This document shows positions 14,448 to 35,976 of a stretch of 64,000 nucleotides of DNA, piece by piece. Where the stretch lies: the sequence record NC_048077.1; one strand, given 5' to 3'. Below the pieces are notes generated by a model that was not told the DNA's origin, made no database searches, and saw nothing but the letters and a program-made list of their open reading frames with translations. A program made the position numbers and the translations under genes. Position 1 is the first letter of the stretch; each line of letters starts with the position of its first letter.

Positions 14448-14480
14448 CTGTAAATAAGGGGTAAGGAAACTTACCCTTTT
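14448..14480 (+). promoter_or_regulatory. CTGTAAATA motif + terminator hairpin (cassette 1)
   Basis: CTGTAAATA at 14448-14456; GGGTAAG-GAAA-CTTACCC then TTTT. Confidence 0.65.
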
Positions 14481-14519
14481 CTATTTGTGGTAGCTTTTTA
14501 ACTTTAATGGGGAAACCAT

Positions 14520-15098
14520 ATGACTTTCGAACCTGAACACTTTCATTTCAGCCTTGCGCATGAGAAAAACTTTCTCGCATACGCTCGTATGCGTTTGATT
14601 GGTGCCTCACTGACGAAAGAAAACTTCTTCGAGAAAGTTTTTCGTCCGGCAGGTGAAAAGCTGGATAGCGAGATCATGCAGATCTTCACCGATCTTCCCG
14701 GCACGCAGGAAATGCACGCTAACATCGGCTTGGATTCCAATCGCGATTACGAAAAGGTGTTGCACGAAATTCAACTCGGCTATGAGTATCATTACGATCT
14801 CTGGCGGCAGAAGCACGAAGCATTAGAAAAAGTTGTTCTGAATGTGCTCTGCGCAGTGAGTGACAACAACGCTCACATGCGTTCACCTCACTGGAAGATT
14901 CCGGATGATGTTGATTCTCGCGTCTGCGTTTACGGCTGCCATTGTGGTTTCCTTTTACGAATTGCAGACCAATTCTTTGTGCGTCCTCGCCTTCGCAAAG
15001 AGTTGCTCTCAAAAGATTATCCTCCAACGATTCGTGTTCAGATTGCTGTAGCTCCGAATCAGGACTTTACCTTTGCAACTCTACGCCGTGCATTCTAA
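14520..15098 (+). CDS. hypothetical protein
   Basis: GGGGA RBS; first gene after cassette 1. Confidence 0.7.
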   Translation: MTFEPEHFHFSLAHEKNFLAYARMRLIGASLTKENFFEKVFRPAGEKLDSEIMQIFTDLPGTQEMHANIGLDSNRDYEKVLHEIQLGYEYHYDLWRQKHEALEKVVLNVLCAVSDNNAHMRSPHWKIPDDVDSRVCVYGCHCGFLLRIADQFFVRPRLRKELLSKDYPPTIRVQIAVAPNQDFTFATLRRAF

Positions 15099-15463
15099 TG
15101 AAAGAAATTCTTATCACTCGCGAAAGAAGATCTGAAATGTTCAAACAACTTCTGGCACTCCAAACGCAATTCTTTCATGCGCGTAAATGGACGTGGCGTG
15201 AAGGTTGGTGCGCTGGCGAAGAGTGTGACGAATGGATAGATGAATCCGGTTCTATTATGTGGGCGTCTGTTCAGGATTACATTTTCTCGCCAGCAAACAT
15301 TATGATGTTCATGGAGAGACACGAAATCTCTATCGAGCATAACGGAAAAGAAAGTTACACGGCAATAACTAATACCGGGATTGTTGGTCACGGTATTTGC
15401 CACCGTAGCGCTGTATTGACAGCAATGATTAATCACTACAGGAAAGAAAATGGAATCAATTAA
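15098..15463 (+). CDS. hypothetical protein, NinX/ABA-sandwich-like
   Basis: TAATG coupling; ..SPANIMMFMERHEISI...YTA...G.G...SAVLTAMI resembles the NinX-type family. Confidence 0.5.
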   Translation: MKEILITRERRSEMFKQLLALQTQFFHARKWTWREGWCAGEECDEWIDESGSIMWASVQDYIFSPANIMMFMERHEISIEHNGKESYTAITNTGIVGHGICHRSAVLTAMINHYRKENGIN

Positions 15464-15944
15464 TCTGCCAATCAAAGATCGCGTACAGCATTACCCATTC
15501 CTTGCTGCGGCGTTCAGTCTGGCGAATATTTCTAAGGCGCGGCGTCGTGCGTGTGGCGCTGTTCTGGTTCGCGAGATTAACGGCATTCCGACTATCGTTG
15601 GTAGCGGAGTAAACGGAACGGAACCGAAGGAAGAAAACCTTTGCGAGACTCACGATCTCACGCTGTCTTTTCCCGGTACTGTTCACGCAGAGATCAATTG
15701 CGTTTCTCCTTTTCGCGAGAGCGCAAAAGACACGGACATTCTTTATATCACCGATTCGCCGTGTGAATTCTGTCTGGAGTTTTTGAAAACAACTTCGATT
15801 CGCACTGTTGTTTTCGCTCGCTGTTATCGCATCACGGAACATATGGAAAAAGCAGAAGGCTTCCGCTTTATTCATATTCCGGAACAGGCAGTGATTGACT
15901 ATATGAACAGTTCAATTTCTCGCATGTCGCAGGTTATTTCGTAA
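15450..15944 (+). CDS. dCMP deaminase
   Basis: SKARRRACGAVLV, VGSGVNG, Zn ligands HAE and SPCEFC. Confidence 0.9.
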   Translation: MESINLPIKDRVQHYPFLAAAFSLANISKARRRACGAVLVREINGIPTIVGSGVNGTEPKEENLCETHDLTLSFPGTVHAEINCVSPFRESAKDTDILYITDSPCEFCLEFLKTTSIRTVVFARCYRITEHMEKAEGFRFIHIPEQAVIDYMNSSISRMSQVIS

Positions 15945-15953
15945 GGCGTCAAA

Positions 15954-16406
15954 ATGGATCAAGTCTATAAATGCCGAAACTGCAAACACATCTATGACGG
16001 AATTGTTAGTAGTTGTGATTGCAATAACGAACCGTTCAAATACACAACTTATTTGGCGATTCCAAAACCAACTCTGCGTAACCCAAAACTGATTGATCAG
16101 TCGCTCATTTCTCCGGGCGTATGGGTACGCAAAGGAACCACAATTTTCGCAGTAACGCCTCAGAAGAAATTTATCGTGGGAACAAGTTCTTCTGAATGTG
16201 ATGATCCGGCACAAGAAGCAGAAGCTGCTATTGCTAATGCGCGTGTAATGGGCGCGAGCAAATTGATGCTCGAAACTTTAATGGTTCTCCAATCGCATTT
16301 CCGCACACGCATTGCTATTAATCCGACTTCGGATGTGCCGCGCTCAATGCTGGAGTTAGTCAACAACGCAATTCAGTATGCAACTGTCGATGCAGAACAG
16401 GAATAA
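15954..16406 (+). CDS. hypothetical protein with N-terminal Zn-ribbon
   Basis: YKCRNC....CDC. Confidence 0.65.
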   Translation: MDQVYKCRNCKHIYDGIVSSCDCNNEPFKYTTYLAIPKPTLRNPKLIDQSLISPGVWVRKGTTIFAVTPQKKFIVGTSSSECDDPAQEAEAAIANARVMGASKLMLETLMVLQSHFRTRIAINPTSDVPRSMLELVNNAIQYATVDAEQE

Positions 16407-16408
16407 AA

Positions 16409-17281
16409 ATGGACTACTACTTTTCTCTTGAAGAACTAAGAGCGTGGGCGCGAGTTTGTTTAATCGTGATCGTATTTGGTTCTCTCTTTTACTCGATGTA
16501 CACCAACTATGTGCGCAATAAATATGAAAAGATTGCGCGTCGTATGTACATCAATGGCGAGCTTGCTGCGGGTCAAGTGTGGCAGCATTATCGCAATAAG
16601 CGTTACTACACGATTCAGGTTGTGTCTAATGCAATTGCGAACGGCAAAGAGTGGCCTCTCACTATCGTATACATGACGGCGAAAGGTTATGCAGTTTACA
16701 GTCGTCCTGCGCACGAATTTATTCGCAAGTTTAAATTGGTGGACGAAGAATCAAACGCACGCGAAACTCCCACGCAAAATCTTCTTGCGTTAATGTCATA
16801 TGTGACGGGACGAGTTTCATTACCGGAACAAGGTTCTAAATGGGTGCGTGAATATGGAGTGCCTACTGGAACATTTAACGAACTCGGTCACTGCGAAACG
16901 CGATTGGTGAAAGAAAAGATTGTGGTTGATAACGTAACTAACCTCAATCAACCGTGTCCGTATGTGAACTATACAGATCAAAACGGTTCGAAGAAAACAA
17001 TCACGCTGCATCACTTCCGACAAAATTTTGTGAAAGATGTAGTGATTACGGATCGCGTGTCGCACTGCATTCTGAATAACGAGAATGTGGCAGCATTGGA
17101 CGAAGCGACTCTTCGCGATGGTGATCGCGTAACTGTAAAAGAAGTAGTAGATAACGAATTTATCGTTGTCGATTACTGCGGCATTTCTGCGAAACTTGTA
17201 ATGGCTACAAAAGGTTTTTACGTGGGCGCAGAATACGTTATTAATGATGGCTGTCTGACGATAGGGAAAGACGATGAGTAA
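16409..17281 (+). CDS. membrane-anchored protein with a DUF1653-like domain
   Basis: N-terminal TM (VCLIVIVFGSLFYSMY); GQVWQHYRNKRYYTI...TIVY....VYSRPAHEF. Confidence 0.6.
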   Translation: MDYYFSLEELRAWARVCLIVIVFGSLFYSMYTNYVRNKYEKIARRMYINGELAAGQVWQHYRNKRYYTIQVVSNAIANGKEWPLTIVYMTAKGYAVYSRPAHEFIRKFKLVDEESNARETPTQNLLALMSYVTGRVSLPEQGSKWVREYGVPTGTFNELGHCETRLVKEKIVVDNVTNLNQPCPYVNYTDQNGSKKTITLHHFRQNFVKDVVITDRVSHCILNNENVAALDEATLRDGDRVTVKEVVDNEFIVVDYCGISAKLVMATKGFYVGAEYVINDGCLTIGKDDE

Positions 17282-18377
17282 TTACCCGCAACTGGATCTC
17301 ACCAAAGAGCGCGACTTTGAAATGTACGCTTACGACAATTACGATTGTTTGTATATGGGGCGCGTCGATGCAATCAGAGCCGAAGGGCGTCCGGTGAGCG
17401 ATCCGAAACGTACAGAAGATCAGTGGCGCACAATTCCCGGTTGTGTTATCCAACTTGCAAATACAGCAATGGCTTTCCCTGCGCCGCTTTCTAAAAAAGC
17501 AAATTGGGTTGCGGCTGTTGATGAAAGCTGCTGGTTCATGCGAGGCGAAACAAATATCAATTCACTCAATTCTAAAATTTGGGATGAGTGGGCTGATGAA
17601 TCCGGCGAATGTGGCCCGATCTATGGTGAAATGTGGCGGCGCTGGCCTGACCTCAAAGCGTTCTATGATTACACGCAACCTTCTGGCGTGTGTCCGGATG
17701 CCGATGTGATTCGTGCTCGCAAAGAAATCGAACGTATGCGTGCGGCAGGCTACAAAGAAACGATGATGCTGGACGGTCGCATTCTGTTTGAAGGCGAAAT
17801 TGATCAGTTGCTGGAAGCGTTAATCGCAATCAAAGATCGTTCGCGTTCGCGCCGCATTCGTGTTCAGGCATTCAATCCTTCTTATCTGCATATGCAGGGA
17901 TTGCCGCCGTGTCACACTGGTTTCGAATTCAACGTGTTGCCGTCAACGCTTTATGAACAAACGATCATGCGTGCTGCACACGGAGAAGCGTTCGAAGAAA
18001 CTCTGCACATTAGCGTCTTTCTTAGATCAAGTGATACCCTCTTGGGTTTGCCCTTTAATGTGATCGGCTATTGCTCTATCTTCCATCTGTTCGCGAAATA
18101 TTGCGGTCTGAATATCGGTAGCTTTACGATTGACAGCACCAACACGCACGTTTACGAACATCACTGGTCGGCGCTGGATAAACAGCGTGAGCAATTCGAA
18201 GAACTGGTTGCGGAAGTTCGTAGCACTGGCAATCCGATGCAATATCCGATCATGCGTATCGATCCGAAAATCTTCTCGCTGGAGCCGAAAGAACTTCTGG
18301 ATTCGATTAGCGTAGAAATGTTTAATCTCGAAGGTTACAATCCGAAAGGTAAGATTACCGGGCGCGTGACCAAATAA
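17274..18377 (+). CDS. thyA: thymidylate synthase
   Basis: ESCWFMRGETN, IWDEWA, GPIYG, SRRI, catalytic LPPCH, RSSD.LLGLPFN, HVY. Confidence 0.9.
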   Translation: MSNYPQLDLTKERDFEMYAYDNYDCLYMGRVDAIRAEGRPVSDPKRTEDQWRTIPGCVIQLANTAMAFPAPLSKKANWVAAVDESCWFMRGETNINSLNSKIWDEWADESGECGPIYGEMWRRWPDLKAFYDYTQPSGVCPDADVIRARKEIERMRAAGYKETMMLDGRILFEGEIDQLLEALIAIKDRSRSRRIRVQAFNPSYLHMQGLPPCHTGFEFNVLPSTLYEQTIMRAAHGEAFEETLHISVFLRSSDTLLGLPFNVIGYCSIFHLFAKYCGLNIGSFTIDSTNTHVYEHHWSALDKQREQFEELVAEVRSTGNPMQYPIMRIDPKIFSLEPKELLDSISVEMFNLEGYNPKGKITGRVTK

Positions 18378-18418
18378 ACTATGGCGGCCTTGTGCCGCCT
18401 TTTTCATAGGGAATCCGT

Positions 18419-19129
18419 ATGCCTATCATGCGTAATTGGTTTCACTTTGCGGCAGTACATCGTGACAATATTCGTGATGTGCGTATCCAATTTGAAAGTG
18501 AATCGGAAACAGATCATAATGAAATGTATCAACACAAGATCGGTTCTCCGGTTGTGCTTGGTATAAATCAAGGCGATAAAAATATTTCCCATTTCATTGA
18601 TGCGACTATTCTTGCCGTGCGTTTCAGTGAAAGAGTCTGCTATGATATCGCGGTGCCGATTGGCAACTCAGGCGTTATGGCAGTGATGAAAATGATTTCC
18701 GGGAGTAACCTGCGTTCACCTGAAACTGCATACGAACCGGAACCAGCGCCCATTGAAAATAAAGTAAATCTCTCCATTGTGCCAAAAGAGCTTGTCGAAG
18801 TGGAAGATTTAAGTCCGGTTGCGTGTGAACGTTTTCCGGAAACTTATTTCGGCGAACAGGTTTCCGATATGCCTCCGCGAAAACATTGCGTGAAGGTGAA
18901 GAGTTTAAAAATTTCTGGCACGATGCAGTCAGAAGAAAACCATTTTCAAATCGGAGACGAAGTTATTATTCCTAACTCTCCAAATTCCATGCGTGGATTA
19001 ATCTACGCTATCAACGTTAGTCAGCATTTCTCGTATGACATTGCAGTGCCTACGTGTGACGGCTACTATGCAATCCATCGCGATATTGATGCTGAATATA
19101 TTGAAGCTAACCCGGCTAAGGAAGAATAA
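18419..19129 (+). CDS. hypothetical protein with two internal SH3-like repeats
   Basis: HKIGSPV...AVRFSERVCYDIAVP and FQIGDEV...AINVSQHFSYDIAVP. Confidence 0.65.
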   Translation: MPIMRNWFHFAAVHRDNIRDVRIQFESESETDHNEMYQHKIGSPVVLGINQGDKNISHFIDATILAVRFSERVCYDIAVPIGNSGVMAVMKMISGSNLRSPETAYEPEPAPIENKVNLSIVPKELVEVEDLSPVACERFPETYFGEQVSDMPPRKHCVKVKSLKISGTMQSEENHFQIGDEVIIPNSPNSMRGLIYAINVSQHFSYDIAVPTCDGYYAIHRDIDAEYIEANPAKEE

Positions 19130-19776
19130 TGTTTAAATATCCGTTTAAAATTTTAGGTGTTGAAGCTATTGGCACTCAAGGACGCGCTGAAATCTACACC
19201 GAAAGTTTAGTTCCGGCTATCGGTTCCATTGTTCCGCTTGACCTGCATCCTTTTGCGCAGCACGGCCTTTGGTTCGTTACAGGTTGTGAAAATGGTGCGA
19301 TTCAAATCGCAACTTATCGTATTCAGATTGACGATCCGTTTGCTCTGGTGAAATTTATCAACTCTGGTTTAGTGCAAAACAAAGACGCTGATAATCGCAG
19401 AGTAATGATCAGCAAGTTCACACACGAATTCGTAAATGAATTGGCGCGTGCTGAAAAGAAATTCCCGAATTGGAACAAAGACGCCGTTTATGCAGCAAGC
19501 ATTATGGGCGAAGAGAGCGGAGAAACTTTGCAGGCTGCGCTGGACTACCAGCAAGCGCCAGCGCATAGCGATGAACTGAAAGCGAAGATTCTTTTAGAGG
19601 CGATTCAAACGGGCGCAATGGCGTTACGCCTTCTGATCAACGGCGATAGTTTTGAGCATGACAGCAAATCGTTCTCGGTTGCCGAAGTCGATTCAATCCG
19701 CAAAATGTTGGAACTGCAACTCGATCCTGCGGAGATTGTTTCGTTCATCAAAGATTTGATTCAGGAAAAAGGATGA
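19129..19776 (+). CDS. protein with C-terminal MazG-like (all-alpha NTP pyrophosphatase) domain
   Basis: ELARAEKKFP...IMGEESGETLQA...LLEAIQTGAMALR (EExxE plus a downstream E). Confidence 0.55.
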   Translation: MFKYPFKILGVEAIGTQGRAEIYTESLVPAIGSIVPLDLHPFAQHGLWFVTGCENGAIQIATYRIQIDDPFALVKFINSGLVQNKDADNRRVMISKFTHEFVNELARAEKKFPNWNKDAVYAASIMGEESGETLQAALDYQQAPAHSDELKAKILLEAIQTGAMALRLLINGDSFEHDSKSFSVAEVDSIRKMLELQLDPAEIVSFIKDLIQEKG

Positions 19777-20024
19777 TTCCATATAATGAAACTGCGGCGC
19801 AAATTTCTTTTTATGTTATTTTTTATAGCATACTTCTGTCTCTTAGCGCTGCTTTATCGTGGTGCGTATGTCGAGTATATAAAGTGATGCACGCTCACTT
19901 GAAAATATTCGCAGATTGTACGGACAGAGAGGCGCATATCGTTTTGGCAGCAACACTGGCAACATCTACGTGGTTGGTCAATCTTCCTATTAAACTTTTG
20001 CTTTTTGTACTCACGCTAATTTGA
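19773..20024 (+). CDS. small membrane protein
   Basis: Two hydrophobic segments. Confidence 0.55.
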   Translation: MIPYNETAAQISFYVIFYSILLSLSAALSWCVCRVYKVMHAHLKIFADCTDREAHIVLAATLATSTWLVNLPIKLLLFVLTLI

Positions 20025-20052
20025 AAGGGAATAATATTAGCGCGAGGTAGAC

Positions 20053-20364
20053 ATGTTCAAACCATTTAGATTTTTCGGACAGGAGAGAGCGCCGTCTAAT
20101 GGGTTTTATCACATACGAAATTTCGTGCGAGATATTCCCGTTGACGCTGGACTCGAAGAGATTGAATTCGATTTCACTCCGGTAGAAATGAAAGCAATGT
20201 ATCGCCCATCGTTGGCGCTCGAAGTTTATGACGTTGATGATGAGATTGAAATAACTTCTATCGGAGTCCTCGGAAGCAAGTTGCTTGTCCGTTTGCAGAG
20301 ACGCACTGGAAAAATTGCTCACATCAAAGCAGTATGGGAAGAGAGGTATCTTTATGACTCTTAA
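20053..20364 (+). CDS. hypothetical protein
   Basis: GAGG RBS. Confidence 0.65.
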   Translation: MFKPFRFFGQERAPSNGFYHIRNFVRDIPVDAGLEEIEFDFTPVEMKAMYRPSLALEVYDVDDEIEITSIGVLGSKLLVRLQRRTGKIAHIKAVWEERYLYDS

Positions 20365-20758
20365 TTCCGGAATGCTGGTTGAGGATTACACTGGAACTTA
20401 TCTCGTGCTGCGCGGCATTCCTCCGCGTGAAGGTTGTGTTGTAGAAACCGAAGACGTGCCTTATATAAAGCTATCGTCTTCTGGTCGTGGTTATATTCTG
20501 GAATACATTTATGTTCCGGAAAGAATGAGAGGACATAAACTTTCGTTGTCCTTGCTGGAAGTTTTGTTTGAATATCAGGAGAAGAATAAAATCGACTTCC
20601 TGAAATTCGAATGTATTTGCAAACCCTTCTGGCGAAAAGTTTCGGCGAAGTTTCCGAAGCGTATTTTCTTCCCTCCAACTGTACTGCAAAAAACTAATGT
20701 CGCTGTTGTGCGCCTGCCACACATAAGACCCTCCGCAATCAAGATTGGAAAACTGTAA
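20354..20758 (+). CDS. GNAT-fold acetyltransferase-like protein
   Basis: LEYIYVPERMRGHKLSLSLL resembles GNAT motif A (V.P..RG.G); GAGAGG RBS before ATG 20354. Confidence 0.55.
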   Translation: MTLNSGMLVEDYTGTYLVLRGIPPREGCVVETEDVPYIKLSSSGRGYILEYIYVPERMRGHKLSLSLLEVLFEYQEKNKIDFLKFECICKPFWRKVSAKFPKRIFFPPTVLQKTNVAVVRLPHIRPSAIKIGKL

Positions 20759-20784
20759 ATATAAGGGGAAAGGATATCCCCTTA
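20753..20784 (+). promoter_or_regulatory. CTGTAAATA motif + hairpin (cassette 2)
   Basis: CTGTAAATA at 20753-20761 contains the upstream stop; TAAGGGGA-7nt-TCCCCTTA; no T-run. Confidence 0.6.
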
Positions 20785-20803: not shown

Positions 20804-21508
20804 ATGAAAACTCTTACTCCCGTCATTTCCTGCCAATGGTTCCATAACGGAGATTTCCCCGGCGAAAATCCCGACTTTGAAGGAACGGTTGTGCGCTATT
20901 TCCGCCATCCAAATCATCCCGGCGATTCTATTTGTCCACACTGCAATAACAAATTTCACGATCATGGTTTTGTAGACCGTTCGGAATCAATGGTTGTTTG
21001 TCCGGGCGATGTTCTTTTCAGTTTCTACGCCAACGATGTGATAGAAAATCTCGGAAAAATCAGCGCTAAGACTTATAAAGAAATCTTCGGCGCAGAAGCA
21101 TTATTCCGGGCGCAACAACACAATCGCTCGTTTTCTTCCGGCGATACAGCCGAAGAAATTTTCCGTCGCAAGTTCTCTCTAGAGTACGCGCCGCAAATCC
21201 GTTCATACCTGAATGCTAAACTGGCTGAACACTGCAAACAGCATACGCAGTTGAAACTTGCTCCTCCGTATCCTCCACGCAATTTGAATACGCTGGAGTG
21301 GCACGTTAACCGCCTGAACGAAGCTATCGTGGAATACTGGACGCTGATTGCTTCTGAGTATCGCACAAACAATTCGCTTTCTTCTCGTGTTATGTGCGTC
21401 TGGAATTCTCCACTGATCAGAGAATTGCAGAATGACCTCAAGCCTCTTGATCTCAAACTTTTCGCAGAGGAAGAATTTAATGAACGATTCCCCAATTGGA
21501 AAAATTGA
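20804..21508 (+). CDS. hypothetical protein with a CxxC/His cluster
   Basis: GAGG RBS; ICPHCNNKFHDHG...VVCPGD. Confidence 0.7.
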   Translation: MKTLTPVISCQWFHNGDFPGENPDFEGTVVRYFRHPNHPGDSICPHCNNKFHDHGFVDRSESMVVCPGDVLFSFYANDVIENLGKISAKTYKEIFGAEALFRAQQHNRSFSSGDTAEEIFRRKFSLEYAPQIRSYLNAKLAEHCKQHTQLKLAPPYPPRNLNTLEWHVNRLNEAIVEYWTLIASEYRTNNSLSSRVMCVWNSPLIRELQNDLKPLDLKLFAEEEFNERFPNWKN

Positions 21509-22902: not shown

Positions 22903-23746
22903 TAGCAGTGCGAAACTCGGTCTTTGGATCGTCGTTGAGCCAGAAGAAAACGAAGTGATCATGGAAGGAACTTTCGAGCATACCTATGTCGGAAAAATTC
23001 TTCTGGAAAACACAACGATCAAAAAAGTCGGCGAACAGTATCATATCACGTATGAAGATGTGAGTCTGCCCGGTCATACGGAAGTGTACGATCATGTGGC
23101 GATGTTCCATGCGCACGCGCTTTCTCCTTATTTCGAAAACATCAACGCAGTTGAGCACGGTTGTCTGCCGTCTGATTTTCCTGCGCCGATGATCAAGAAG
23201 ATGCAGGAAGCGATCAAAGATAAAGGCCAGACACTGACTGCTAACGAACTGTTCGGAAAACTTACGATCAACATCTTCGAAAAAGAAGAATTGGTTGCTA
23301 CGTTTGAAGCGCCAACGGCTGAGGCGTATCTGGATTATCTCGTTAGCGGATTGCCTCGCGCAAAGAATTTCTACGATCACCGTGCGAAAACGTTCGGACA
23401 TTACGGCAATGACAAAACCGAAGCCTATGTGGAACAGCTTAACGATAAACTGAGCGCTGCGGCTAACGCGGTCGGTGTTCCTGTTTCGTATGCGTTCTTT
23501 GATGCCAATGCTTTGCATTTCGTTGTCGGTTTCCGCAATGGGCGATCTACTGTTCAGAGCTATCCGGGCTGCATTCTGAACTTTCTCGAAGAGAATCAGA
23601 TTGAAGTTCCTTTCGAAGTGATTACGGAAGAAAATTCATTTGCATTTGGTAGTGGTATTGAGAAAGTTCTTCCGGCGCATATTCTGCACACCATGCGCAA
23701 TCTGAACAAATGGCCTATTTTGCAACTGATCGGTAAAGTTAGGTAA
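22883..23746 (+). CDS. hypothetical protein (start uncertain)
   Basis: GAGGA upstream of GTG 22883; alternative ATG at 22961. Confidence 0.65.
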   Translation: MNIISADSSAKLGLWIVVEPEENEVIMEGTFEHTYVGKILLENTTIKKVGEQYHITYEDVSLPGHTEVYDHVAMFHAHALSPYFENINAVEHGCLPSDFPAPMIKKMQEAIKDKGQTLTANELFGKLTINIFEKEELVATFEAPTAEAYLDYLVSGLPRAKNFYDHRAKTFGHYGNDKTEAYVEQLNDKLSAAANAVGVPVSYAFFDANALHFVVGFRNGRSTVQSYPGCILNFLEENQIEVPFEVITEENSFAFGSGIEKVLPAHILHTMRNLNKWPILQLIGKVR

Positions 23747-23747
23747 T

Positions 23748-23785
23748 CTGTAAATAAGGGATGTGAAGTGCATCCCTTTTGTTTT
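23748..23785 (+). promoter_or_regulatory. CTGTAAATA motif + terminator hairpin (cassette 3)
   Basis: CTGTAAATA at 23748-23756; AAGGGATG-7nt-CATCCCTT then TTGTTTT. Confidence 0.65.
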
Positions 23786-23795
23786 GGAGGAAAGA

Positions 23796-24131
23796 ATGTT
23801 AGTGATTGATAAGCGCACGCCTGCGAATATCGAATACCGGGAGCTTTCAATAAGTGGGCTTGTCGGTACGCGGCTTGTTTCTTTGCTTGGGACAAGTATT
23901 TTTGCGGAACTGGCGCACGAAAACATTCAAGCAGAACTGGAATTCTATTTGAATGCTTGGGACATTCCTAATCAGGCAGAACTGCATCAATTTACTGGCG
24001 AAACTTCTGACGCTGCGTTGGAGCTAACGAAGTTCTGCGAAGGTAAAAAGCGTGTTGCTGTTTGCCGCGATTGGATGAATCTTACTATTCATATGGCGGA
24101 TATCTCTAATGTTGAACAAACGTCTAACTGA
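23796..24131 (+). CDS. hypothetical protein
   Basis: GGAGG RBS. Confidence 0.7.
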   Translation: MLVIDKRTPANIEYRELSISGLVGTRLVSLLGTSIFAELAHENIQAELEFYLNAWDIPNQAELHQFTGETSDAALELTKFCEGKKRVAVCRDWMNLTIHMADISNVEQTSN

Positions 24132-24396
24132 ATTGGAAGCAATTCTTAAAACTATTAAAATAGACGAAGCGGCAGTTAATGGCGCATTGGATAAAATCAA
24201 ACAGATTCGTGAAGAAGAAAATGAAGTGCCAAAAGTATTCACGGTGAAACATTACGTGTCTGATGAGCATCCATCACTGCGGGGAATAGGAGTAGATATT
24301 TTTGTTGCGGAGGATCGCGATGAAGTTGAAGAATTTGCTGCTGACCTTAACCGCTTACTGGCGAGAATTCCTCCTCACAAAAATTCGCAGGGTTGA
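24109..24396 (+). CDS. hypothetical protein
   Basis: Tiles the operon. Confidence 0.6.
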   Translation: MLNKRLTELEAILKTIKIDEAAVNGALDKIKQIREEENEVPKVFTVKHYVSDEHPSLRGIGVDIFVAEDRDEVEEFAADLNRLLARIPPHKNSQG

Positions 24397-24748
24397 GTTT
24401 CGCCGTGCGAAGTTTCGCGAAGTCGCTGACGCTTTCTTGCTGTATGAGTCGTTAAGAAATTTCGATGATCTGTATAGCGTGTGGGATTACGGCACGGTGT
24501 ATGCTGCATTCCACAAAAGTATTCTGATTGGCTACATGTCCATTTCTGACGATGAGCTGATCAGTTTTTATGTTTGCCCTGAGTGGCGAAATAAAGGCTT
24601 GGGAAATGCCTTATTGGAGAGATACTCTCCGCTTGTATCACATGTTATGGTGTGGCGTGATAATAAAAAAGCATTCCACCTATACAATAAATATGGTTTT
24701 CGAAAAGAAATCCACTCCACTGAAACAGTTGTTGTGTTAGGAAAATAA
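24302..24748 (+). CDS. GNAT (RimI-like) acetyltransferase (start uncertain)
   Basis: FYVCPEWRNKGLGNALL and V..DN..A..LY.KYGF motifs. Confidence 0.8.
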   Translation: MLRRIAMKLKNLLLTLTAYWREFLLTKIRRVEFRRAKFREVADAFLLYESLRNFDDLYSVWDYGTVYAAFHKSILIGYMSISDDELISFYVCPEWRNKGLGNALLERYSPLVSHVMVWRDNKKAFHLYNKYGFRKEIHSTETVVVLGK

Positions 24749-24750
24749 TA

Positions 24751-24906
24751 ATGGATATGTTAACCGCGTTCGTTTTCTTTATCATGATTATCCTTATGCT
24801 GATAGTCGGCGCAGTTACAGTGTTGTTGTTCGCAATCAAAAATTTCCCAATTATTTCGGCTATCGTTGTTGCAGCGGTAGTCGTCTATTTCATCAAACGC
24901 AAATGA
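24751..24906 (+). CDS. 51-aa two-pass membrane protein (not in the ORF track)
   Basis: MDMLTAFVFFIMIILMLIVGAVTVLLFAIKNFPIISAIVVAAVVVYFIKRK; AGGA RBS. Confidence 0.6.
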   Translation: MDMLTAFVFFIMIILMLIVGAVTVLLFAIKNFPIISAIVVAAVVVYFIKRK

Positions 24907-26344: not shown

Positions 26345-26700
26345 AATCTTTAAAACTTATGTTCTGCCTTTTGTTTGTTTCCTGTTTCAGCTTCGGAAGC
26401 ACTATCGTAACTTCTGTTGGAAACAGTACATTTGTTTCGGATAGTAACGGAACAACGGTATACAACAAGGTGGGAAATCAGATTTACGGAAGCGATGGAA
26501 CATCTGTAAATAGGTATGGTAACACCACTATTCTGAATGACGGGCAAGGCAATTCCACCATCTACAATAAAGTTGGTAACAGCACGCTAGGCAGCGACGG
26601 CACGCTGATTCAGAATGTAGGCGGCAGCATTTTTATTACTGACGGCAACGGTAAAACAACTGTTTGCTCTCATGTAGGAAACTCAACCTTCTGCAATTAG
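26341..26700 (+). CDS. secreted beta-hairpin repeat protein
   Basis: Signal-peptide-like MKSLKLMFCLLFVSCFSFG; three repeats of about 33 aa built on VGN(S/T)T and SDG turns. Confidence 0.7.
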   Translation: MKSLKLMFCLLFVSCFSFGSTIVTSVGNSTFVSDSNGTTVYNKVGNQIYGSDGTSVNRYGNTTILNDGQGNSTIYNKVGNSTLGSDGTLIQNVGGSIFITDGNGKTTVCSHVGNSTFCN

Positions 26701-29260: not shown

Positions 29261-29738
29261 GGGGAAGTTCGTGGCAGCGATACGTGGGTTCGTAACGCGA
29301 CTTCTCTGCACGCACGATTGGAAACGTTTTCGAACTATTCACGGAGACGAAGCTAATTATGCGCGTAGCGAATGGCGTTGCACGAAATGTAACAAACATC
29401 GCTACAGTATTTTCATCAACGAAATGGAACAAGATGTTCCCAAAGAGCCGTTGCTAAAACGCATTGCGCATTCGATCCGCTACACCATCGGAAGCATTGC
29501 GTTTCATTGCCTCAACAAAGAAGACCGTGATGCAATTTATCGCGATTATCGAATGGGGCATGAGTTGCGCACGGTTGAAACGTGGATGTGCGAATTTCCG
29601 CAGGCGGTAGAAACAGCACGTTATCTACGTGTCCATAGTTACGGATACAAAGATGATTTGCCTTTCGACCATCCGGATCGCCATGCTGCGCGGGATATCT
29701 CCTGTTGGCGAGAAGACTTTAGGCGTCGATTTAAATAA
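29250..29738 (+). CDS. hypothetical protein with a C-x-H..CxxC Zn motif
   Basis: LLCTHDW....WRCTKCNK. Confidence 0.6.
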   Translation: MSTKGKFVAAIRGFVTRLLCTHDWKRFRTIHGDEANYARSEWRCTKCNKHRYSIFINEMEQDVPKEPLLKRIAHSIRYTIGSIAFHCLNKEDRDAIYRDYRMGHELRTVETWMCEFPQAVETARYLRVHSYGYKDDLPFDHPDRHAARDISCWREDFRRRFK

Positions 29739-29739
29739 A

Positions 29740-29780
29740 CTGTAAATAAAGGCTATCAGCATATTGTTGGTAGCCTTTTT
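29740..29780 (+). promoter_or_regulatory. CTGTAAATA motif + terminator hairpin (cassette 4)
   Basis: CTGTAAATA at 29740-29748; 13-bp stem AAAGGCTATCAGC/GTTGGTAGCCTTT (with G-U pairs) plus T-run. Confidence 0.65.
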
Positions 29781-29798
29781 CATTTTCTGGAGCGTAAC

Positions 29799-30392
29799 AT
29801 GGAACTTAATGAGATTGATCGTTGGCAAGAATGTCTGCATGAGTTTGGCGGCATTCCGGTAGGCACAAGTGTTGATAGTATCCCTATTGATGTTCTGAAT
29901 AATATCCGTCACTATCTGGAGCCGAAAGGTTCTCGCGTTTTTCTTTTGCCTTACTACGGTCTGGAAGTTGCGGTAGATGTGCAAAACAATATTGATTTGA
30001 ACATGGAGACGATCCCAAATCGTTTCATTACCGAAAGCGCACGCGAAAAATTAAGTGCTGATCCGGATCAGCACGGCACGCCAGATATTCACTATATAGG
30101 TGCGAAAGAAGTTATTCAGGAAATGCTTCTGCAAATTCGTGCGCATTACGATGCTGTTCAGATGCACCGCTTTGATGATTTCCTTATTTACTCTGAAACT
30201 GAATTTGGTATGTGGGAATTGTGGTTCCACAAAAGCGGCGATTGCAGCGTAGCACATGCGCCTAAATATATGGACTTCAACGCGTGGGTAGAAGAACGTT
30301 CGCAAACGTATATCGGCGTTAGCTGTCTGAATGTTCCAAACACCCTCTATGAAATCGAAGGGCAGGATCTTCTGCGTAAATTTGTGTGGTAA
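29799..30392 (+). CDS. hypothetical protein
   Basis: GGAG RBS. Confidence 0.7.
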   Translation: MELNEIDRWQECLHEFGGIPVGTSVDSIPIDVLNNIRHYLEPKGSRVFLLPYYGLEVAVDVQNNIDLNMETIPNRFITESAREKLSADPDQHGTPDIHYIGAKEVIQEMLLQIRAHYDAVQMHRFDDFLIYSETEFGMWELWFHKSGDCSVAHAPKYMDFNAWVEERSQTYIGVSCLNVPNTLYEIEGQDLLRKFVW

Positions 30393-30394
30393 TC

Positions 30395-30873: not shown

Positions 30874-30880
30874 GAATTTT

Positions 30881-31312
30881 ATGAACAATATTCGTGTTGA
30901 CCGTCCGATAGTTCTTGATCTGAATCCTCGCCGTAGAATCACGGTGCGTCATTGCTATCAAGCATTGCAGCAACTCTCTATCATCTATAACGCAGAAGTT
31001 GGTTACGATGATCCGGTTGATATTCACAACGATAGAGGCCACGTATACCACACGGCATTAACTCCTGATGGAGACATGCGTACATGGTGCGCTCTAATGC
31101 GCCAGTGGAGTGTTATCGATCCGGAAACAAAACGGCGCGTATCCGTACTGTATTTCGATATACCTACCGAAGTTACTTTGCAGACGTGCGCCGATCTTTG
31201 GAACAAATACATCAAGCGTGCAACTGAATCCATTCCTTCTGTTCGCATGGAAGAAATGTGCAAAGTGTTCCGCGATGAAATTGAACTGATGGAAAGTTAC
31301 CGGGAGGAATAA
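30881..31312 (+). CDS. hypothetical protein
   Basis: AGGA RBS. Confidence 0.65.
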   Translation: MNNIRVDRPIVLDLNPRRRITVRHCYQALQQLSIIYNAEVGYDDPVDIHNDRGHVYHTALTPDGDMRTWCALMRQWSVIDPETKRRVSVLYFDIPTEVTLQTCADLWNKYIKRATESIPSVRMEEMCKVFRDEIELMESYREE

Positions 31313-31839
31313 TGGAAAAGAATTCTGATAAAAGAATCGTGGTGATGGATATTGAAATGTTTGCGCGACTCATGGAGTACGCCAACATCGGAGAATTCGA
31401 AGCCGGACAGATAACCGGATCAACTCTCGCTGAAATCAAACGCCACGTAAACAAACAAAACACTTTCTTAGGTGAAGCGCGTACCCGCACGGCACTGGAG
31501 GAAGGCAAAGAGCGTAAGAAAATCTCGGAACAGTTGAAGCGTAAGGCGCGTTATATCAGCCTGCGCAAAACTGTAAAGTTCTATTATGCCGAAGGACAGC
31601 GCCTGATTCCCGTTACATTGGGAAACAATAGTCAGTGGAAAAAGAATTTCCACAATTGGGGGCACCCACAAGTTTCCATTAATGTGATTCTCCACTACCC
31701 GGTAGAGGAAATTCATACGCGCATTCGCATAACAGATTTGCTTTGTGATCCTTTCGACAACGAATACATTGCTAATCTGATTAACAACGAAGGGTATGTA
31801 AAGGAAGAACTCGATGCTCAAGAAGATAAAATTTGCTGA
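31312..31839 (+). CDS. hypothetical protein
   Basis: GGAGG RBS; TAATG coupling. Confidence 0.7.
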   Translation: MEKNSDKRIVVMDIEMFARLMEYANIGEFEAGQITGSTLAEIKRHVNKQNTFLGEARTRTALEEGKERKKISEQLKRKARYISLRKTVKFYYAEGQRLIPVTLGNNSQWKKNFHNWGHPQVSINVILHYPVEEIHTRIRITDLLCDPFDNEYIANLINNEGYVKEELDAQEDKIC

Positions 31840-32653
31840 CTCTCTGCGTTACTTTAAAGAAGAACGTGAAGAAGAACGAGCGGCGAAACTTGTTGGTCGT
31901 GAATTCAATTTTGAATCTGGTCGTATCAACGTTCTGATTGGTGAGAACGGCAGCGGCAAAAGTTCTTTGCTTGAATCACTGGCAAAGAAAATCATGGCAT
32001 ATAACTACGGTCATACGCGTCTTGATGATCGCTTGATTCGCTTCAACGATGAATACTGGACTAAAGAAGATCCGGATCGTTGGTACAGCAAAGAGATTTA
32101 TATGCCAGACGTTACCGTTGAAAGTGATGCACCAATCTACGGCATGTATATGTCGCCAGATTGGAAACCGTGCGACTCTCTCAATTGGGCGCACGCTCTC
32201 TGCTACGGTTTAGGCAAAGAGGCAACGGATCATTTTAAACGCACGGAGAATTTTTCTTCCGGTCAGGGTATGAGTAACGTGATTACTCATATCGCAATGG
32301 CGTTAAAAGAACGCAGCCCGGAAGTAAGTTTGGAAGAAGTGAAATATCACATTCGCCCACAAGATGATAACCATCTTGCGAAGCGTGCGAAATTCTTGCA
32401 GAAACTTTTACCTCCGGCGGGTAGCAACATCGTTGCTATGTTTGATGAACCTGAACGCACTTTAGATTTAGGTTCGCAACTTGTTTTCTGGCAACTGATG
32501 AATGACATTTCGAAGCGTGAGCACGTACAGATTATCGTTGCGTCTCATAGCTGCATTCCGTTAATGTCTCCGGATAAATTCAATTTCATTGAAATGACGG
32601 ACGGCTACAAAAACAAACTGCTGAATATTACGGCAGACCTATCTTTCAAATAG
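31814..32653 (+). CDS. stand-alone ABC-type ATPase (AAA_21-like)
   Basis: Walker A GENGSGKS, signature FSSGQ, Walker B/D-loop AMFDEPERTLD, H-loop IIVASHS. Confidence 0.85.
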   Translation: MLKKIKFADSLRYFKEEREEERAAKLVGREFNFESGRINVLIGENGSGKSSLLESLAKKIMAYNYGHTRLDDRLIRFNDEYWTKEDPDRWYSKEIYMPDVTVESDAPIYGMYMSPDWKPCDSLNWAHALCYGLGKEATDHFKRTENFSSGQGMSNVITHIAMALKERSPEVSLEEVKYHIRPQDDNHLAKRAKFLQKLLPPAGSNIVAMFDEPERTLDLGSQLVFWQLMNDISKREHVQIIVASHSCIPLMSPDKFNFIEMTDGYKNKLLNITADLSFK

Positions 32654-32661
32654 GGATTCTT

Positions 32662-32916
32662 ATGAGCAAGGTAGAATACGCTCCGGAAATAAATAACGGT
32701 GTTGCTGAAATCGTTAAGTACCGCGTGCGGCGAATCAATGATTGGGTATCGCATAGAATACCTGTATCCCGCCGCAAAGTTATTCGCGGAAACACTTATC
32801 AGAATATTCGCCGCTGGAGTTTCGAAGACTCTGGAGAAAACATTCCGGTTGAACTTGCAGTAAAACTTAACGCGCTCGATATCAAAGAGCGCTTTAAACA
32901 GGCAGGAATGAAATGA
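32662..32916 (+). CDS. hypothetical protein
   Basis: AGGGA RBS. Confidence 0.6.
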   Translation: MSKVEYAPEINNGVAEIVKYRVRRINDWVSHRIPVSRRKVIRGNTYQNIRRWSFEDSGENIPVELAVKLNALDIKERFKQAGMK

Positions 32917-33314
32917 AAGCGCTGAGTGTTAAACAACCGTGGGCGTGGCTACTGGCAAATGGATTCAAAGATATTGAAAACCGTAGCTGGCACACAAAGA
33001 TACGCGGTAATGTTTTGATCCACGCATCGAAGGGAATGACTCGCAAAGAGTATGCAGAGGCAAAAGAACTCTGCGATAAACTCGGCGTAAGGCTTCCGCA
33101 ATTCGAGGATCTTGATCGCGGCTGTATCGTAGGCATGATGGAAATTTTCGATTCAGTTGATGCCAGCGATTCACCGTGGTATTTCGGGCAAGTAGGTTTC
33201 TGCGTGCGTAAAGCGCGACCATGTAATCCAATTCCGATGAAAGGTAAGTTGAGTTTCTTCGAGACTGGTATTGAAGCGGAGGATCTGAAATGGATACGCA
33301 GGAAAACGAAATAA
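32913..33314 (+). CDS. ASCH-domain protein
   Basis: MKALSVKQPWAWLL..GFKDIENRSW.T..RG.VLIHAS. Confidence 0.9.
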   Translation: MKALSVKQPWAWLLANGFKDIENRSWHTKIRGNVLIHASKGMTRKEYAEAKELCDKLGVRLPQFEDLDRGCIVGMMEIFDSVDASDSPWYFGQVGFCVRKARPCNPIPMKGKLSFFETGIEAEDLKWIRRKTK

Positions 33315-33316
33315 AA

Positions 33317-34048
33317 ATGTCGGAAGGAATGATTACAGGAATCGAATTAAAAGCAAGTCGTTGTCCTCCCGGATTATGGGAAGCGGTTGTGCGCGAACAG
33401 CAACGCCTTTCTCGGTTGCTGGATATGCTCTCGCCGTACCGTACTGTATATCGCACGCTTCCGGGAAGCTGGCATTTTCCTAGTACGGAACAGTCGTTAG
33501 GTCGATTAAATCGCGGCATGTCTCCGTTTGTTCCTCTTCCGGACTATGAACCTTTCTTTGAACTTGAACGATTCGAAGAAACCATTCAACGCAATCTGAT
33601 TCAATCAATGGGAATCAATCCCGATATTCTGAAAGAACATTGCGTGCATCGTTCGAAGATCAAAGTAGGAGACGATAATCGCATGTACTCCATTGCACGC
33701 CGTCCGGGGAAAGCAACTATGATGCACCGTTCTGATCCGCGCACCATTACCGCAAGCCTCCTTTATTCAGGACTCGATCCGGATAAGATTTTGATAATCG
33801 ATCCAAAGTTCGCACCTGTTCCGAATTGGGAAAAGGAACTTGAAGATTTTCCGCGTACATGGGAAGGAACTTTCACGGTAGAAAACAAAGACGATTTGAA
33901 AAACTTTATGGAAGGTTTAGCCCAAAAGCCTATTCCACACTATGCGCCAAAGCCGGAAGTGAATCTTTCGCCGCGTGCAAAACGCAAATCGTTAATTCAG
34001 GCAACACGTAAGAGATTCAAAAAGGCTAGAAAAAATGGACGCAAATAA
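33317..34048 (+). CDS. hypothetical protein with a basic C-terminal tail
   Basis: Starts right after the ASCH stop (alternative start 33290). Confidence 0.65.
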   Translation: MSEGMITGIELKASRCPPGLWEAVVREQQRLSRLLDMLSPYRTVYRTLPGSWHFPSTEQSLGRLNRGMSPFVPLPDYEPFFELERFEETIQRNLIQSMGINPDILKEHCVHRSKIKVGDDNRMYSIARRPGKATMMHRSDPRTITASLLYSGLDPDKILIIDPKFAPVPNWEKELEDFPRTWEGTFTVENKDDLKNFMEGLAQKPIPHYAPKPEVNLSPRAKRKSLIQATRKRFKKARKNGRK

Positions 34049-34565
34049 TCTGATTGCTTTTCTTGTGTTGTGGATTACGTTTGGCGCGATTTTCGCTTTT
34101 ATGGATTTCGTGGAAGCGCTCTATAAAAAGCTGCGTAAGAGAAGTCAATTGAGTTGGGTACAAACGTTTGTGTATCCTGCTCTGATTATTATTCTCTGGC
34201 CTGTAGTGATAGTTACGTTAATTTTACAGGTGTGTTTTCCCAAAACGTTTTCGCGCTTGCGTCGCTGGCTGGATTTTAAAACGCGCTTCTATCCGGTTCC
34301 GCTGTATAAAAGCGCAGAGTTTGATCCTCGACTTTTGAAATCTAAGTTGTGTGAAGTATCAGTTATCGAATGGCAGAAGCCGGGATATCTATACGAAACA
34401 ACTCTGGATCTTTACGTGTATGAAAACGTAAACACCGGATTGCTTCGAATTGCGATTAACTACTCTGAGTCAAGCGGCAAATATAAGTACGTGTCGCACT
34501 GGCAGACGTGGGTAGGAAAACACAATCTCTTTAACTCTCGACTGATTGAGGAACAAAATGCGTAA
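34035..34565 (+). CDS. membrane protein
   Basis: Two N-terminal TM segments. Confidence 0.65.
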   Translation: MDANNLIAFLVLWITFGAIFAFMDFVEALYKKLRKRSQLSWVQTFVYPALIIILWPVVIVTLILQVCFPKTFSRLRRWLDFKTRFYPVPLYKSAEFDPRLLKSKLCEVSVIEWQKPGYLYETTLDLYVYENVNTGLLRIAINYSESSGKYKYVSHWQTWVGKHNLFNSRLIEEQNA

Positions 34566-34875
34566 ACTCTCGCTGGAAGAACTGCTCGACATTCGCAAAA
34601 AACTGATCAAACTCGTTGATGATCGCCGCACAAAATTGTACGAGAAAGGGAAAGAAGATCCTAACCAAATGAATTGGTCGATCCGCAAAGTCCCTACGGC
34701 TATCAGCGATGCCTACGAAGATATTGGATTCCTGCGCGATCATATTTCGCGTCTGGATTACTTTATTGATATGCGCGAAGCCGACGAAGCAAAAGAACTT
34801 TCGGAAGAACGTTCGAAAGAGTTGCTGGACTCGCTGCCTGCGGAACTTCGCGAGGAAGCCGATGATACCGAGTAA
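34558..34875 (+). CDS. hypothetical helical protein
   Basis: GAGGA RBS; ATG 34558. Confidence 0.65.
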   Translation: MRKLSLEELLDIRKKLIKLVDDRRTKLYEKGKEDPNQMNWSIRKVPTAISDAYEDIGFLRDHISRLDYFIDMREADEAKELSEERSKELLDSLPAELREEADDTE

Positions 34876-35185
34876 AGGAATTGATCGTGCGCCGTTGCCT
34901 GCAAAAATCGAAGAACTGATTTATGGTGACGTGGATAATGCGCTTCGCCGTTTATCTAGTTTACTTGTGCGCGTTGCTGATAAAGAAAAGCTATCCAGCA
35001 TGACAGGATTTATCTATTCTCGCGATACGCTGAAAGGTACGCCTGCACATTTGATCACGTCTAATTTCTCTGGCGATAATCGTCAAGTTTTGTTAGACAA
35101 AGATGCAGGCATGTCGAAACTTCATTTCACGATTACTGCGAACGTTGACGGAACTATTTCATCGCATGTTGATCACTGGATTTAG
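34862..35185 (+). CDS. hypothetical protein
   Basis: GAGGA RBS; ATG 34862. Confidence 0.6.
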   Translation: MIPSKGIDRAPLPAKIEELIYGDVDNALRRLSSLLVRVADKEKLSSMTGFIYSRDTLKGTPAHLITSNFSGDNRQVLLDKDAGMSKLHFTITANVDGTISSHVDHWI

Positions 35186-35549
35186 ACGAACCGAAGTTGT
35201 GAGCATGAGGAACGGCAATAACAACTTCGACATTCGAATAGATCGCCAAAGTAAGTGGGGGAATCGTCACTACATGAATGATGATTCCCCTGCTGAAAGG
35301 GATCGAGTTTGCGACGAACACGAAAAGGAATTGTGGGAAAAGATTTATGCAGGTGATATTTCTCTGAGCGAGTTAGAAGAACTCTATGGGAAAAGATTAG
35401 GCTGTTGGTGTAAACCTAAACGCTGTCACGGTGATGCGTTAGCTGATGCTGCTGAATGGGCGCACCGATTAATGGTTATTCTGAGGCGACTTAGAAGAAG
35501 GAAAAAGAATGCCAAACGCAAGCGTATTAAAAAACAGAAAGTGTTGTAA
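35166..35549 (+). CDS. DUF4326-family protein
   Basis: VV......DIRIDR.SKWGN...L.EL.GKRLGCWCKPKRCHGDAL. Confidence 0.8.
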   Translation: MLITGFRRTEVVSMRNGNNNFDIRIDRQSKWGNRHYMNDDSPAERDRVCDEHEKELWEKIYAGDISLSELEELYGKRLGCWCKPKRCHGDALADAAEWAHRLMVILRRLRRRKKNAKRKRIKKQKVL

Positions 35550-35724
35550 GTGTGGGTGGCCTGTTGTATTTCTTCTCTGCAACAAAAAGCTTATGACTAC
35601 ACCACCTTACAGCAATTTCGATTATTGGGAATACTGCGCCAACAAAACGTGTGAACATCACGAAGGGCAAGGTATCTATAGCGCTACAGGCAACGCTGAT
35701 TTTGTTGAGGTAGAAAATGACTAA
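35509..35724 (+). CDS. small Cys/His-rich putative Zn-binding protein
   Basis: CCKCG...CN...YCANKTCEHH. Confidence 0.6.
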   Translation: MPNASVLKNRKCCKCGWPVVFLLCNKKLMTTPPYSNFDYWEYCANKTCEHHEGQGIYSATGNADFVEVEND

Positions 35725-35962
35725 GAAAGTACAACGCGAAATTAAAAGTATTACAGTACGTCCGGATAAAGAAATCACGGACGCATTCAACGAACTTTGC
35801 CGCGAAGTTGGTATTCCTCCTGCAACGTATATTCGCCGCTTCATGGAAAATTGTACGCGTGAAAATCGTCTTCCTATTGAGCACCTGCCTCAAGATATCG
35901 TTGACCGTATGCGCCGCGCCGTAACTGAGCATGACCGACTGAAATTTATCTTGGGAGAGTAA
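35717..35962 (+). CDS. RelB/DinJ-like ribbon-helix-helix protein
   Basis: ITVRPDKEITDAFNELCREVGIPPATYIRRFMENCTRENRLPI parallels RelB/DinJ v.aRiD..lK..A..vl...G.t.S..vR.fl....re..lPf. Confidence 0.6.
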   Translation: MTKKVQREIKSITVRPDKEITDAFNELCREVGIPPATYIRRFMENCTRENRLPIEHLPQDIVDRMRRAVTEHDRLKFILGE

Positions 35963-35976
35963 CTGTAAACAATAAG
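35963..35976 (+). promoter_or_regulatory. variant motif CTGTAAAC-AATA (cassette 5, no clear hairpin)
   Basis: Immediately after the stop at 35960-35962, in the same position as cassettes 1-4. Confidence 0.4.

Follow-up and report, generated by a model that had tools for sequence, protein, structure and literature searches.

A putative single-element promoter of PaBG-like jumbo phages, packed in places against intrinsic terminators

The first 64,000 bases of Dickeya phage vB_DsoM_JA11 (NC_048077.1, bases 1-64000, 100% identical), which we refer to as the window, carry repeated copies of a short, strand-specific motif, AAW-CTGTAAA-YA, that is most likely a phage-type promoter, an activity we infer from its statistics, geometry and conservation. 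In the reading that we favor, with a probability of roughly 0.6, the motif is a single-element promoter of the PaBG-like clade, and the cassettes in which it directly abuts a hairpin would end one transcript and restart another. JA11 is a 255,356 bp jumbo phage of the genus Salmondvirus, and is grouped with the jumbo myoviruses PaBG, Lu11 and Y3 (PMC7412058). Two genome papers from this clade describe neither a promoter consensus nor terminators (PMC6143709, PMC7412058), and our literature search found no mention of the motif or of transcript mapping in the PaBG-like clade. Orphans make up about 70% of the genes. A consensus valid for the whole clade would provide a handle on operon structure and timing.

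All genome-wide counts are for the full JA11 genome, joined. The 9-mer CTGTAAATA occurs 16 times, always on the sense strand, for an order-3 Markov expectation of 1.0 per strand, and AATCTGTAAA has 21 sense occurrences for 0.7 expected, so that the enrichment over expectation ranges from 16-fold to 30-fold with a complete strand bias. Fifteen of the 16 exact 9-mers are intergenic or overlap a stop codon. The shorter 7-mer CTGTAAA appears 67 times in sense and 11 times in antisense, and 35 of the 67 sense copies fall between genes or at gene ends, which together make up 6% of the genome (p ~1e-25; the gene calls used in the counts are approximate, and the class of each site was verified by eye in the annotation). 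This is the intergenic enrichment that the first-pass annotation of the window, made from the sequence alone, had proposed to look for. In the window itself there are five exact copies of CTGTAAATA, all on the + strand, for 0.38 expected, and none of 100 shuffles reaches five. The first-pass annotation had placed four of them, at 14448, 20753, 23748 and 29740, and the variant CTGTAAACA at 35963, with correct coordinates and strand, and had them at or just past stop codons in agreement with the gene annotation; it missed the exact copy at 26504 and the variants at 37809 and 7477. The stop codons bring up the possibility of an artefact, in which chance or codon context puts CTG-TAA and an A-rich stretch before terminators. 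In about 9 of the 35 intergenic sites, among them five exact 9-mers, the upstream gene does end on the TAA of the motif, and the copy at 26504 looks random. Given the enrichment, the complete strand bias, and the retention of the motif in genomes spanning 40-56% GC, this explanation is hardly credible. At the remaining sites, which are the majority, the TAA is out of frame or past the real stop, and therefore the motif is not a translational signal.

The alignment of 41 JA11 sites, with positions counted from the C of the motif, results in the 12-base consensus AAW-CTGTAAA-YA. The information content is limited to positions -3 to +8, and we find none upstream of position -4, where a -35 element would be. 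The upstream AAW is present in 29 of the 41 sites, compared to 7 of 37 coding-internal and antisense copies. Downstream of the motif, a purine occupies position +15, the seventh past the 9-mer, in 35 of the 41 JA11 sites, in 24 of 29 sites in the related phages AD1 and Y3, and in 24 of 29 sites in distant metagenomic loci (83/99 altogether), compared to 20 of the 37 control copies inside genes or in antisense. There is also a depletion of C at positions 9-16 of the JA11 sites. The distance from the motif C to the start codon is 31-72 nt at most sites, and the shortest spacing from motif end to ATG found anywhere is 17-18 nt, barely enough to accommodate a start 7 nt downstream and a Shine-Dalgarno sequence. 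Judged from these positions, the geometry is that of a -10-type element, with TAAAYA at a predicted -12 to -7. A reading similar to a MotA box, with the motif at -30 and a -10 further 3', was ruled out as nothing is conserved past +16. In the favored reading, the 12-bp element would be read as about -18 to -7 without a -35 box, and the host core RNA polymerase would initiate at the purine about 7 nt past the 9-mer.

Two known promoter types resemble this element in part. The T4 late promoter is an 8-bp sequence, TATAAATA, that drives virion genes and is recognized by gp55 together with gp33 and the gp45 clamp; its TAAATA is the melted part, and the start lies 6-7 nt downstream. Like the T4 late promoter, the JA11 motif is a single -10-like element without a -35, its six 3' bases TAAATA are identical, and its purine peak at +15 matches the T4 start distance. 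Unlike it, the upstream half is AAW-CTG and not TA, with G for A at the second position, and TATAAATA itself has only 6 occurrences in the JA11 genome, 3 per strand. With the extended -10 promoters of sigma70 (TGnTATAAT), the motif shares a TG 5' of an A/T-rich hexamer and no need for a -35. It differs from them in that the TG is directly contiguous with the TAAAYA hexamer and has no spacer base, position -7 is mostly A (25 of 41 sites), and there is an additional conserved C as well as the AAW upstream.

The same features bear on whether the motif acts in RNA instead, either as the target of a host or phage endoribonuclease that separates the genes of polycistronic RNAs, with hairpins that protect the resulting ends, or as the binding site of a protein that modulates terminators. 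The motif is sense-specific, intergenic, AU-rich, single-stranded and often beside stem-loops, all of which suit an RNA signal, and sequence tests do not separate DNA from RNA recognition. We consider an RNA-level role quite unlikely, because a purine peak at a fixed distance and a minimum Shine-Dalgarno spacing are predicted by a transcription start and not by cleavage within the motif, because the TAAATA half equals the sequence that melts in T4 late promoters, and because most sites have no hairpin nearby. In addition, no Rfam family has a match anywhere in the window.

Four of the exact copies in the window are followed at once by a hairpin, all on the + strand. The first, AAA-CTGTAAATA at 14445..14456 (9-mer at 14448), lies 8 nt past the gp019 stop; it is followed by a terminator-like stem-loop with 10 pairs and a loop of 4 at 14456-14479, with a T-rich tail to 14488, and gp020 starts at 14520. 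The predicted start is A 14463. For the second, AAA-CTGTAAATA at 20750..20761 (9-mer at 20753), the internal TAA is the gp029 stop, the predicted start is G 20768, and gp030 starts at 20804. Directly past this motif there is a hairpin with 8 pairs and a loop of 7 at 20762-20784; it has no T-run on the + strand and so is probably not a terminator in that direction. In the third, AAT-CTGTAAATA at 23745..23756, the 9-mer at 23748 is 1 nt past the gp033 stop, with a predicted start at G 23763, a terminator-like stem-loop at 23756-23778 with a T-run to 23788, and gp034 starting at 23796. The fourth, AAA-CTGTAAATA at 29737..29748, has its 9-mer at 29740, 1 nt past the gp046 stop, and a predicted start at A 29755; a terminator-like stem-loop with 14 pairs and a loop of 3 occupies 29748-29778, with a T-run to 29788, ahead of gp047 at 29799. 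The terminator scan starts the stems at 14456, 23756 and 29748 on the last A of the motif. These three have the canonical features of an intrinsic terminator (a G+C-rich stem with 10-14 pairs, a 3-4 nt loop, and a T-run) and are predicted to terminate transcription, and the stem sequences of the window hairpins are mutually unrelated. The scan agrees here with the first-pass description of unrelated hairpins next to the four copies, three of them with T-runs. On the - strand, at 14459-14476 and 20766-20781, the motif complement TATTTACAG provides a T-rich tail for the same hairpins, so that two of the cassettes also score as antisense terminators.

Folding is informative about what such an arrangement could do. 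The full hairpin, as present in a read-through RNA, has a folding energy of -10.8 to -19.7 kcal/mol. RNAs begun 6-9 nt past the motif retain 0 to -11 kcal/mol, a loss of 41-100% that is mostly more than half, and their residual stem is parted from the U-tract by several unpaired bases. Going by what intrinsic termination is known to require, the truncated RNAs should no longer terminate. We propose that in six JA11 gaps, the four above and two outside the window, the promoter directly adjoins the intrinsic terminator that closes the preceding operon, with the left arm of the terminator spanning roughly -7 to +6. An RNA coming from upstream would hold the whole hairpin and the U-tract and would terminate, and an RNA initiated at the motif would lack the base of the stem and would read on. 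The result would be a composite terminator/promoter cassette of about 40 bases, similar in action to the promoter(early)/stem-loop (PeSL) cassettes of T4-like phages.

The motif is conserved well beyond JA11. In phage JA29, 86-93% identical to JA11, every window site is kept. The motif at 14448 is retained despite a 7-nt deletion just 5' of it, and at 23748 the loop has changed and the stem is kept; the JA29 cassette gaps are otherwise too similar to those of JA11 for an analysis of stem covariation. For the first 50 kb of AD1 (50% GC) and of Erwinia phage Y3 (47% GC), the sense to antisense counts of CTGTAAA are 15:0 and 16:0, and the two phages share copies at orthologous positions, including one within the gp006 orthologue. 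In Pseudomonas phage PaBG (56% GC), TGTAAA appears 5:1, all 5' of genes. Five metagenomic contigs with 40-51% GC, and with a sigma factor 38-59% identical to that of JA11, have AAAC-TGTAAA-YA 5' of genes, and in four of the five a motif copy is found in synteny between the sigma and the single-stranded DNA-binding protein (SSB) genes. The phage-specific promoter of the first-pass annotation stands well with a motif that is strand-locked, has no -35, shows a purine peak, and is found clade-wide; its activity is predicted, as is its start.

A further alternative is a polar DNA signal without a role in initiation, such as a recombination or module-shuffling junction, or a sequence oriented by replication or packaging. 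Gene orientation in JA11 is + as far as about 41 kb, - between 41 and 176 kb, and + in the remainder. At about 40000-41100 in the window, the peak in cumulative GC skew coincides with the switch in gene orientation from + to -, and since the two switch together, the polarities of transcription and replication are inseparable for strand-specific motifs in JA11. PeSLs are known to mediate gene shuffling (PMC2839356), and one wastewater contig (run X1) matches only the 38-nt cassette at 23748-23785 with unrelated sequence on both sides, which indicates that this cassette occupies another gene context in a relative. We regard a polar signal of this kind as very improbable, as the motif holds a fixed position 31-72 nt 5' of start codons and has syntenic copies in very divergent genomes. 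Shuffling mediated by the cassettes finds little support in the breakpoints between JA11 and JA29, none of which coincides with a cassette.

The genes behind the motif are those of nucleotide metabolism (gp020-025), two DNA polymerases, a helicase, a clamp loader, SSB, an NAD-ligase, nucleases, recombination genes, and the phage sigma gene gp220. The motif is rare in the structural block at 41-125 kb. The element would thus mainly drive replication, recombination and nucleotide-metabolism genes together with the sigma gene, a set that looks like a middle class. T4 late promoters serve virion genes, so by gene class the motif does not qualify as late in the way of T4; here the T4-late analogy drawn in the first-pass annotation fails. 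That annotation also suggested a search for a sigma factor similar to gp55. None was found, and the only sigma factor that we met is gp220, in a proteome scan that was not exhaustive for relatives of gp55 and gp33. No second sigma appears in Pfam and PHROG scans of the genes beside gp220.

The gp220 gene encodes a 345-aa sigma70-family protein. By itself, gp220 has no match in Pfam or PDB sequence searches, and a profile of 45 gp220 homologues matches only RpoD/SigA, in region 1.2-2.4, with the Y..WW melting residues retained. The AlphaFold model of a 98%-identical homologue (P0001; mean pLDDT 82) has E. coli sigma70 as its best fold match, and it shows region 2 plus a small C-terminal helical domain. 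Based on the region 2 profile match and the sigma70-like model, gp220 belongs to the sigma70 family and is not gp55-like. The family is large, with more than 200 homologues in metagenomes. An own sigma factor and several motifs divided by gene class are also found in the cascades of SPO1 (gp28, gp33/34) and of T4 gp55, from which JA11 differs in that its sigma is sigma70-like in fold and the pairing of sigma and motif is only a candidate.

The reader of the motif could be gp220, or it could be host sigma70 aided by an earlier phage product. A competing target for gp220 exists in a second motif, (C/G)TAATTT(T/A), found 25-45 nt 5' of structural and late genes and in most cases preceded by a GGGTGGC...GCTGCCC terminator. 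It occurs in the window at 5040-5060 (+) and 50770-50780 (-), in JA11 at 68-166 kb (-), and in PaBG (L010, about 48360), and it is kept 5' of the tail-sheath gene in both JA11 and PaBG. Its sequence agrees with C(-13)-TAnnnT, and we see in it a candidate late promoter. As targets of gp220, we give CTGTAAA and CTAATTT about equal chances. CTGTAAA is favored by a TAAATA that equals the T4 late core, and by a motif and a sigma that are conserved together; a sigma gene located behind a CTGTAAA copy favors a cascade, in which CTGTAAA promoters would supply the sigma and the structural-gene motif would then be its target. A stronger proposition, that AAW-CTGTAAA-YA is the cognate promoter of the divergent gp220-family sigma and that the contact with the hairpin is an insulation device selected for through a start inside the stem, is possible and we hold it tentatively, on balance doubting it. 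If true, it would describe a new sigma/promoter pair conserved in jumbo phages of Pseudomonas, Enterobacterales and marine hosts. In either case, the consensus gives the divergent sigma of this large, mostly uncultured group a testable partner.

The reading of the motif as a promoter that restarts transcription from within a terminator has to be weighed against a census of hairpins at the 35 intergenic JA11 sites. A hairpin abuts the motif at six of them (14448, 20753, 23748, 29740, 195948 and 243551), with hairpins that begin 0-2 nt past the 9-mer and stems that begin at the last motif base or 1-3 nt beyond it, and five of the six have T-runs. Four of these six sites fall in the window. About 15 of the 35 sites have no hairpin, and several have hairpins 4-12 nt downstream, mostly without T-runs. 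In another five sites the terminator is 12-28 nt upstream of the motif (137276, 151015, 164364 and 167711 on the - strand, and 245101 on the + strand). Contrary to the first-pass annotation, the hairpin is therefore not part of the element, since it abuts so few sites and other arrangements are common. A start inside the left stem arm, with escape of the new RNA, which that annotation also proposed, is coherent by folding at the four window sites and does not extend to a general rule.

Several observations weigh against the favored reading. Of the 35 JA11 sites, only 6 have the hairpin in contact with the motif, and the AD1 and Y3 sites that we examined have no such contact. All six abutting cases are in the shortest gaps, of 45-80 nt, so that compaction alone could yield the contact. 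At JA11 191750 and Y3 34954, a complete canonical terminator lies between the predicted start and the next gene, and read-through there cannot occur via truncation of the hairpin. As for the promoter itself, a TG that adjoins the hexamer and a non-T at -7 fit neither the extended -10 rule nor TAnnnT. As for its reader, the CTAATTT motif conserved 5' of structural genes competes for the same sigma, and a sigma gene that lies behind the motif disfavors gp220 unless it autoregulates. Finally, the sequencing runs labelled RNA-Seq that hold JA11 are wastewater metagenomes in which the phage has flat coverage and assembles as contigs, which identifies them as metagenomic DNA.

In a rival reading, the motif is a promoter whose hairpins are not bypassed, the hairpins being promoter-proximal attenuators, sources of 5'-UTR small RNAs, stabilizing 5' stem-loops, or a by-product of packing. 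The complete terminators past the predicted start, the reverse order with the terminator first at the five sites listed above, and the squeezing of terminator, promoter and ribosome-binding site into 45-80 nt all suit this explanation. There is also a precedent in the phiKZ-like jumbo phage 201phi2-1, where terminators are found directly past mapped promoters and are read as attenuators or as sources of small RNAs derived from 5' UTRs (PMC11512511). The precedent differs in that the 201phi2-1 terminator lies inside the transcript, resulting in premature termination and small RNAs, and the JA11 cassettes have the predicted start within the stem. We judge it unlikely that the hairpins are not bypassed, for two reasons. 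T-run terminators cluster at offset -1 to +2 from the motif, and few of the hairpins that would be wholly within the transcript have T-runs. When JA11, AD1, Y3, PaBG and the metagenomic loci are pooled, 14 terminator-like hairpins are located no more than 60 nt 3' of TGTAAA, and 8 of these start in the interval -1 to +2, one of them in PaBG. And if transcription starts where the purine peak supports it, the new RNA must lack the base of the stem. Overall, the promoter-in-terminator arrangement is real, uncommon and concentrated in the window, and the escape mechanism is plausible for a minority of sites.

The closest precedent for the JA11 cassettes is the PeSL cassettes of the T4-like phages RB49/phi1, nt-1 and PST (PMC2839356, PMC4122927), for which both terminator and promoter activities have been demonstrated experimentally, and in which five placements of the stem-loop over the promoter occur, one of them just past the -10 (PMC2839356). 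Through this overlap, incoming transcription is halted and a new round begins. Both are short cassettes in which a stop codon is followed by promoter and stem-loop, a Shine-Dalgarno sequence, and an ATG, as in the six abutting JA11 sites, and in both the promoter is conserved while the stems vary. They differ in the promoter, which in PeSLs is a near-consensus sigma70 -35/-10 early promoter and in JA11 a non-sigma70 single element. They differ also in the position of the stem-loop, which in PeSLs is within or upstream of the promoter, before the start, and in JA11 extends from the last motif base and straddles the predicted start. Compared to the shuffling by PeSLs, JA11 gives minimal signs, with breakpoints that avoid the cassettes and the one contig that carries 23748-23785 in other flanks. 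With the abutting cassettes, the PeSL idea of a single short element that ends and restarts transcription would no longer be limited to T4-like phages and sigma70-type promoters. The cassettes would also be a compact, portable promoter/terminator part for the engineering of phages under consideration for the biocontrol of Dickeya and Erwinia.

Other copies of the motif in the window do not have the cassette arrangement. The variant TAA-CTGTAAACA at 35960..35971 (+; 9-mer at 35963) is directly past the gp059 stop and has no hairpin; its predicted start is A 35978, and gp060 starts at 36000. A second variant, AAT-CTGTAAACA at 37806..37817 (+; 9-mer at 37809), is 40 nt 5' of gp063 (37849), and the orthologous JA29 site is CTGTAAATA. 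The variant ATA-CTGTAAATG at 7474..7485 (+; 9-mer at 7477) is within the 3' end of gp006, 72 nt 5' of gp007. AD1 and Y3 carry CTGTAAATA at the same position despite diverged flanks, and by this conservation the variant is probably an internal promoter. The remaining exact 9-mer CTGTAAATA, at 26504..26512 (+), is inside gp040 with the next gene 205 nt away, and has neither an A at -3 nor a hairpin. It is probably the single occurrence expected by chance, although it may be an internal promoter; the copy is also found in JA29. A doubtful variant, CTGTAATTC, is at 58042..58073 on the - strand, where its TAA is the gp092 stop and it adjoins a terminator-like hairpin 5' of gp091. This may be a mere Leu-stop codon pair beside a terminator.

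Outside the window, CTGTAAA also forms tandem arrays in the two longest gaps of the right arm. There are four copies 5' of gp311 at JA11 244976-245109, the first three exactly 27 bp apart, and three copies 5' of gp317 at 251067-251143. These may be stacked promoters or a protein-binding array.

A third type of promoter-like sequence consists of CTGCAAA-N3-5-TGTCCAAAAT and, about 9 nt beyond it, a weak -35 separated by 17 bp from a TAnnnT -10. This type is confined to JA11 200-248 kb (L005, about 850-47330), where it stands 5' of at least 8 genes, all on the + strand. The copies probably serve host sigma70 as early promoters, with the upstream element conserved. At 233412, the -10 (TAAACT) of one such element overlaps a CTGTAAACT copy. 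Matches to a sigma70 -35/-10 are not enriched in 13-33 kb (24, compared to a shuffle expectation of 34), and none of them is within the cassette gaps.

Some annotation differences appear in the comparison with JA29. Three stretches of the window, 19776-20125, 24396-24751 and 35185-35717, are unannotated in JA11 and have open reading frames on the gene strand. As JA29 has annotated genes at two or more of the corresponding stretches, the JA11 annotation there is probably incomplete. The thymidylate synthase gene, at 17274-18377 in the window, is intact in JA11. In JA29 (L007, 17275-19504) it is interrupted by a GIY-YIG/endonuclease gene, similar to a homing endonuclease or an intron. Outside the window, JA11 gp218 (186699-187148) is annotated as an RNA ligase and has a Pfam match to Acb1 (E=1.7e-13), the anti-CBASS 2H phosphodiesterase. 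The contig of a relative, L011, has both Acb1-like and Acb2/Tad1-like genes in the same neighborhood as gp218 in JA11.

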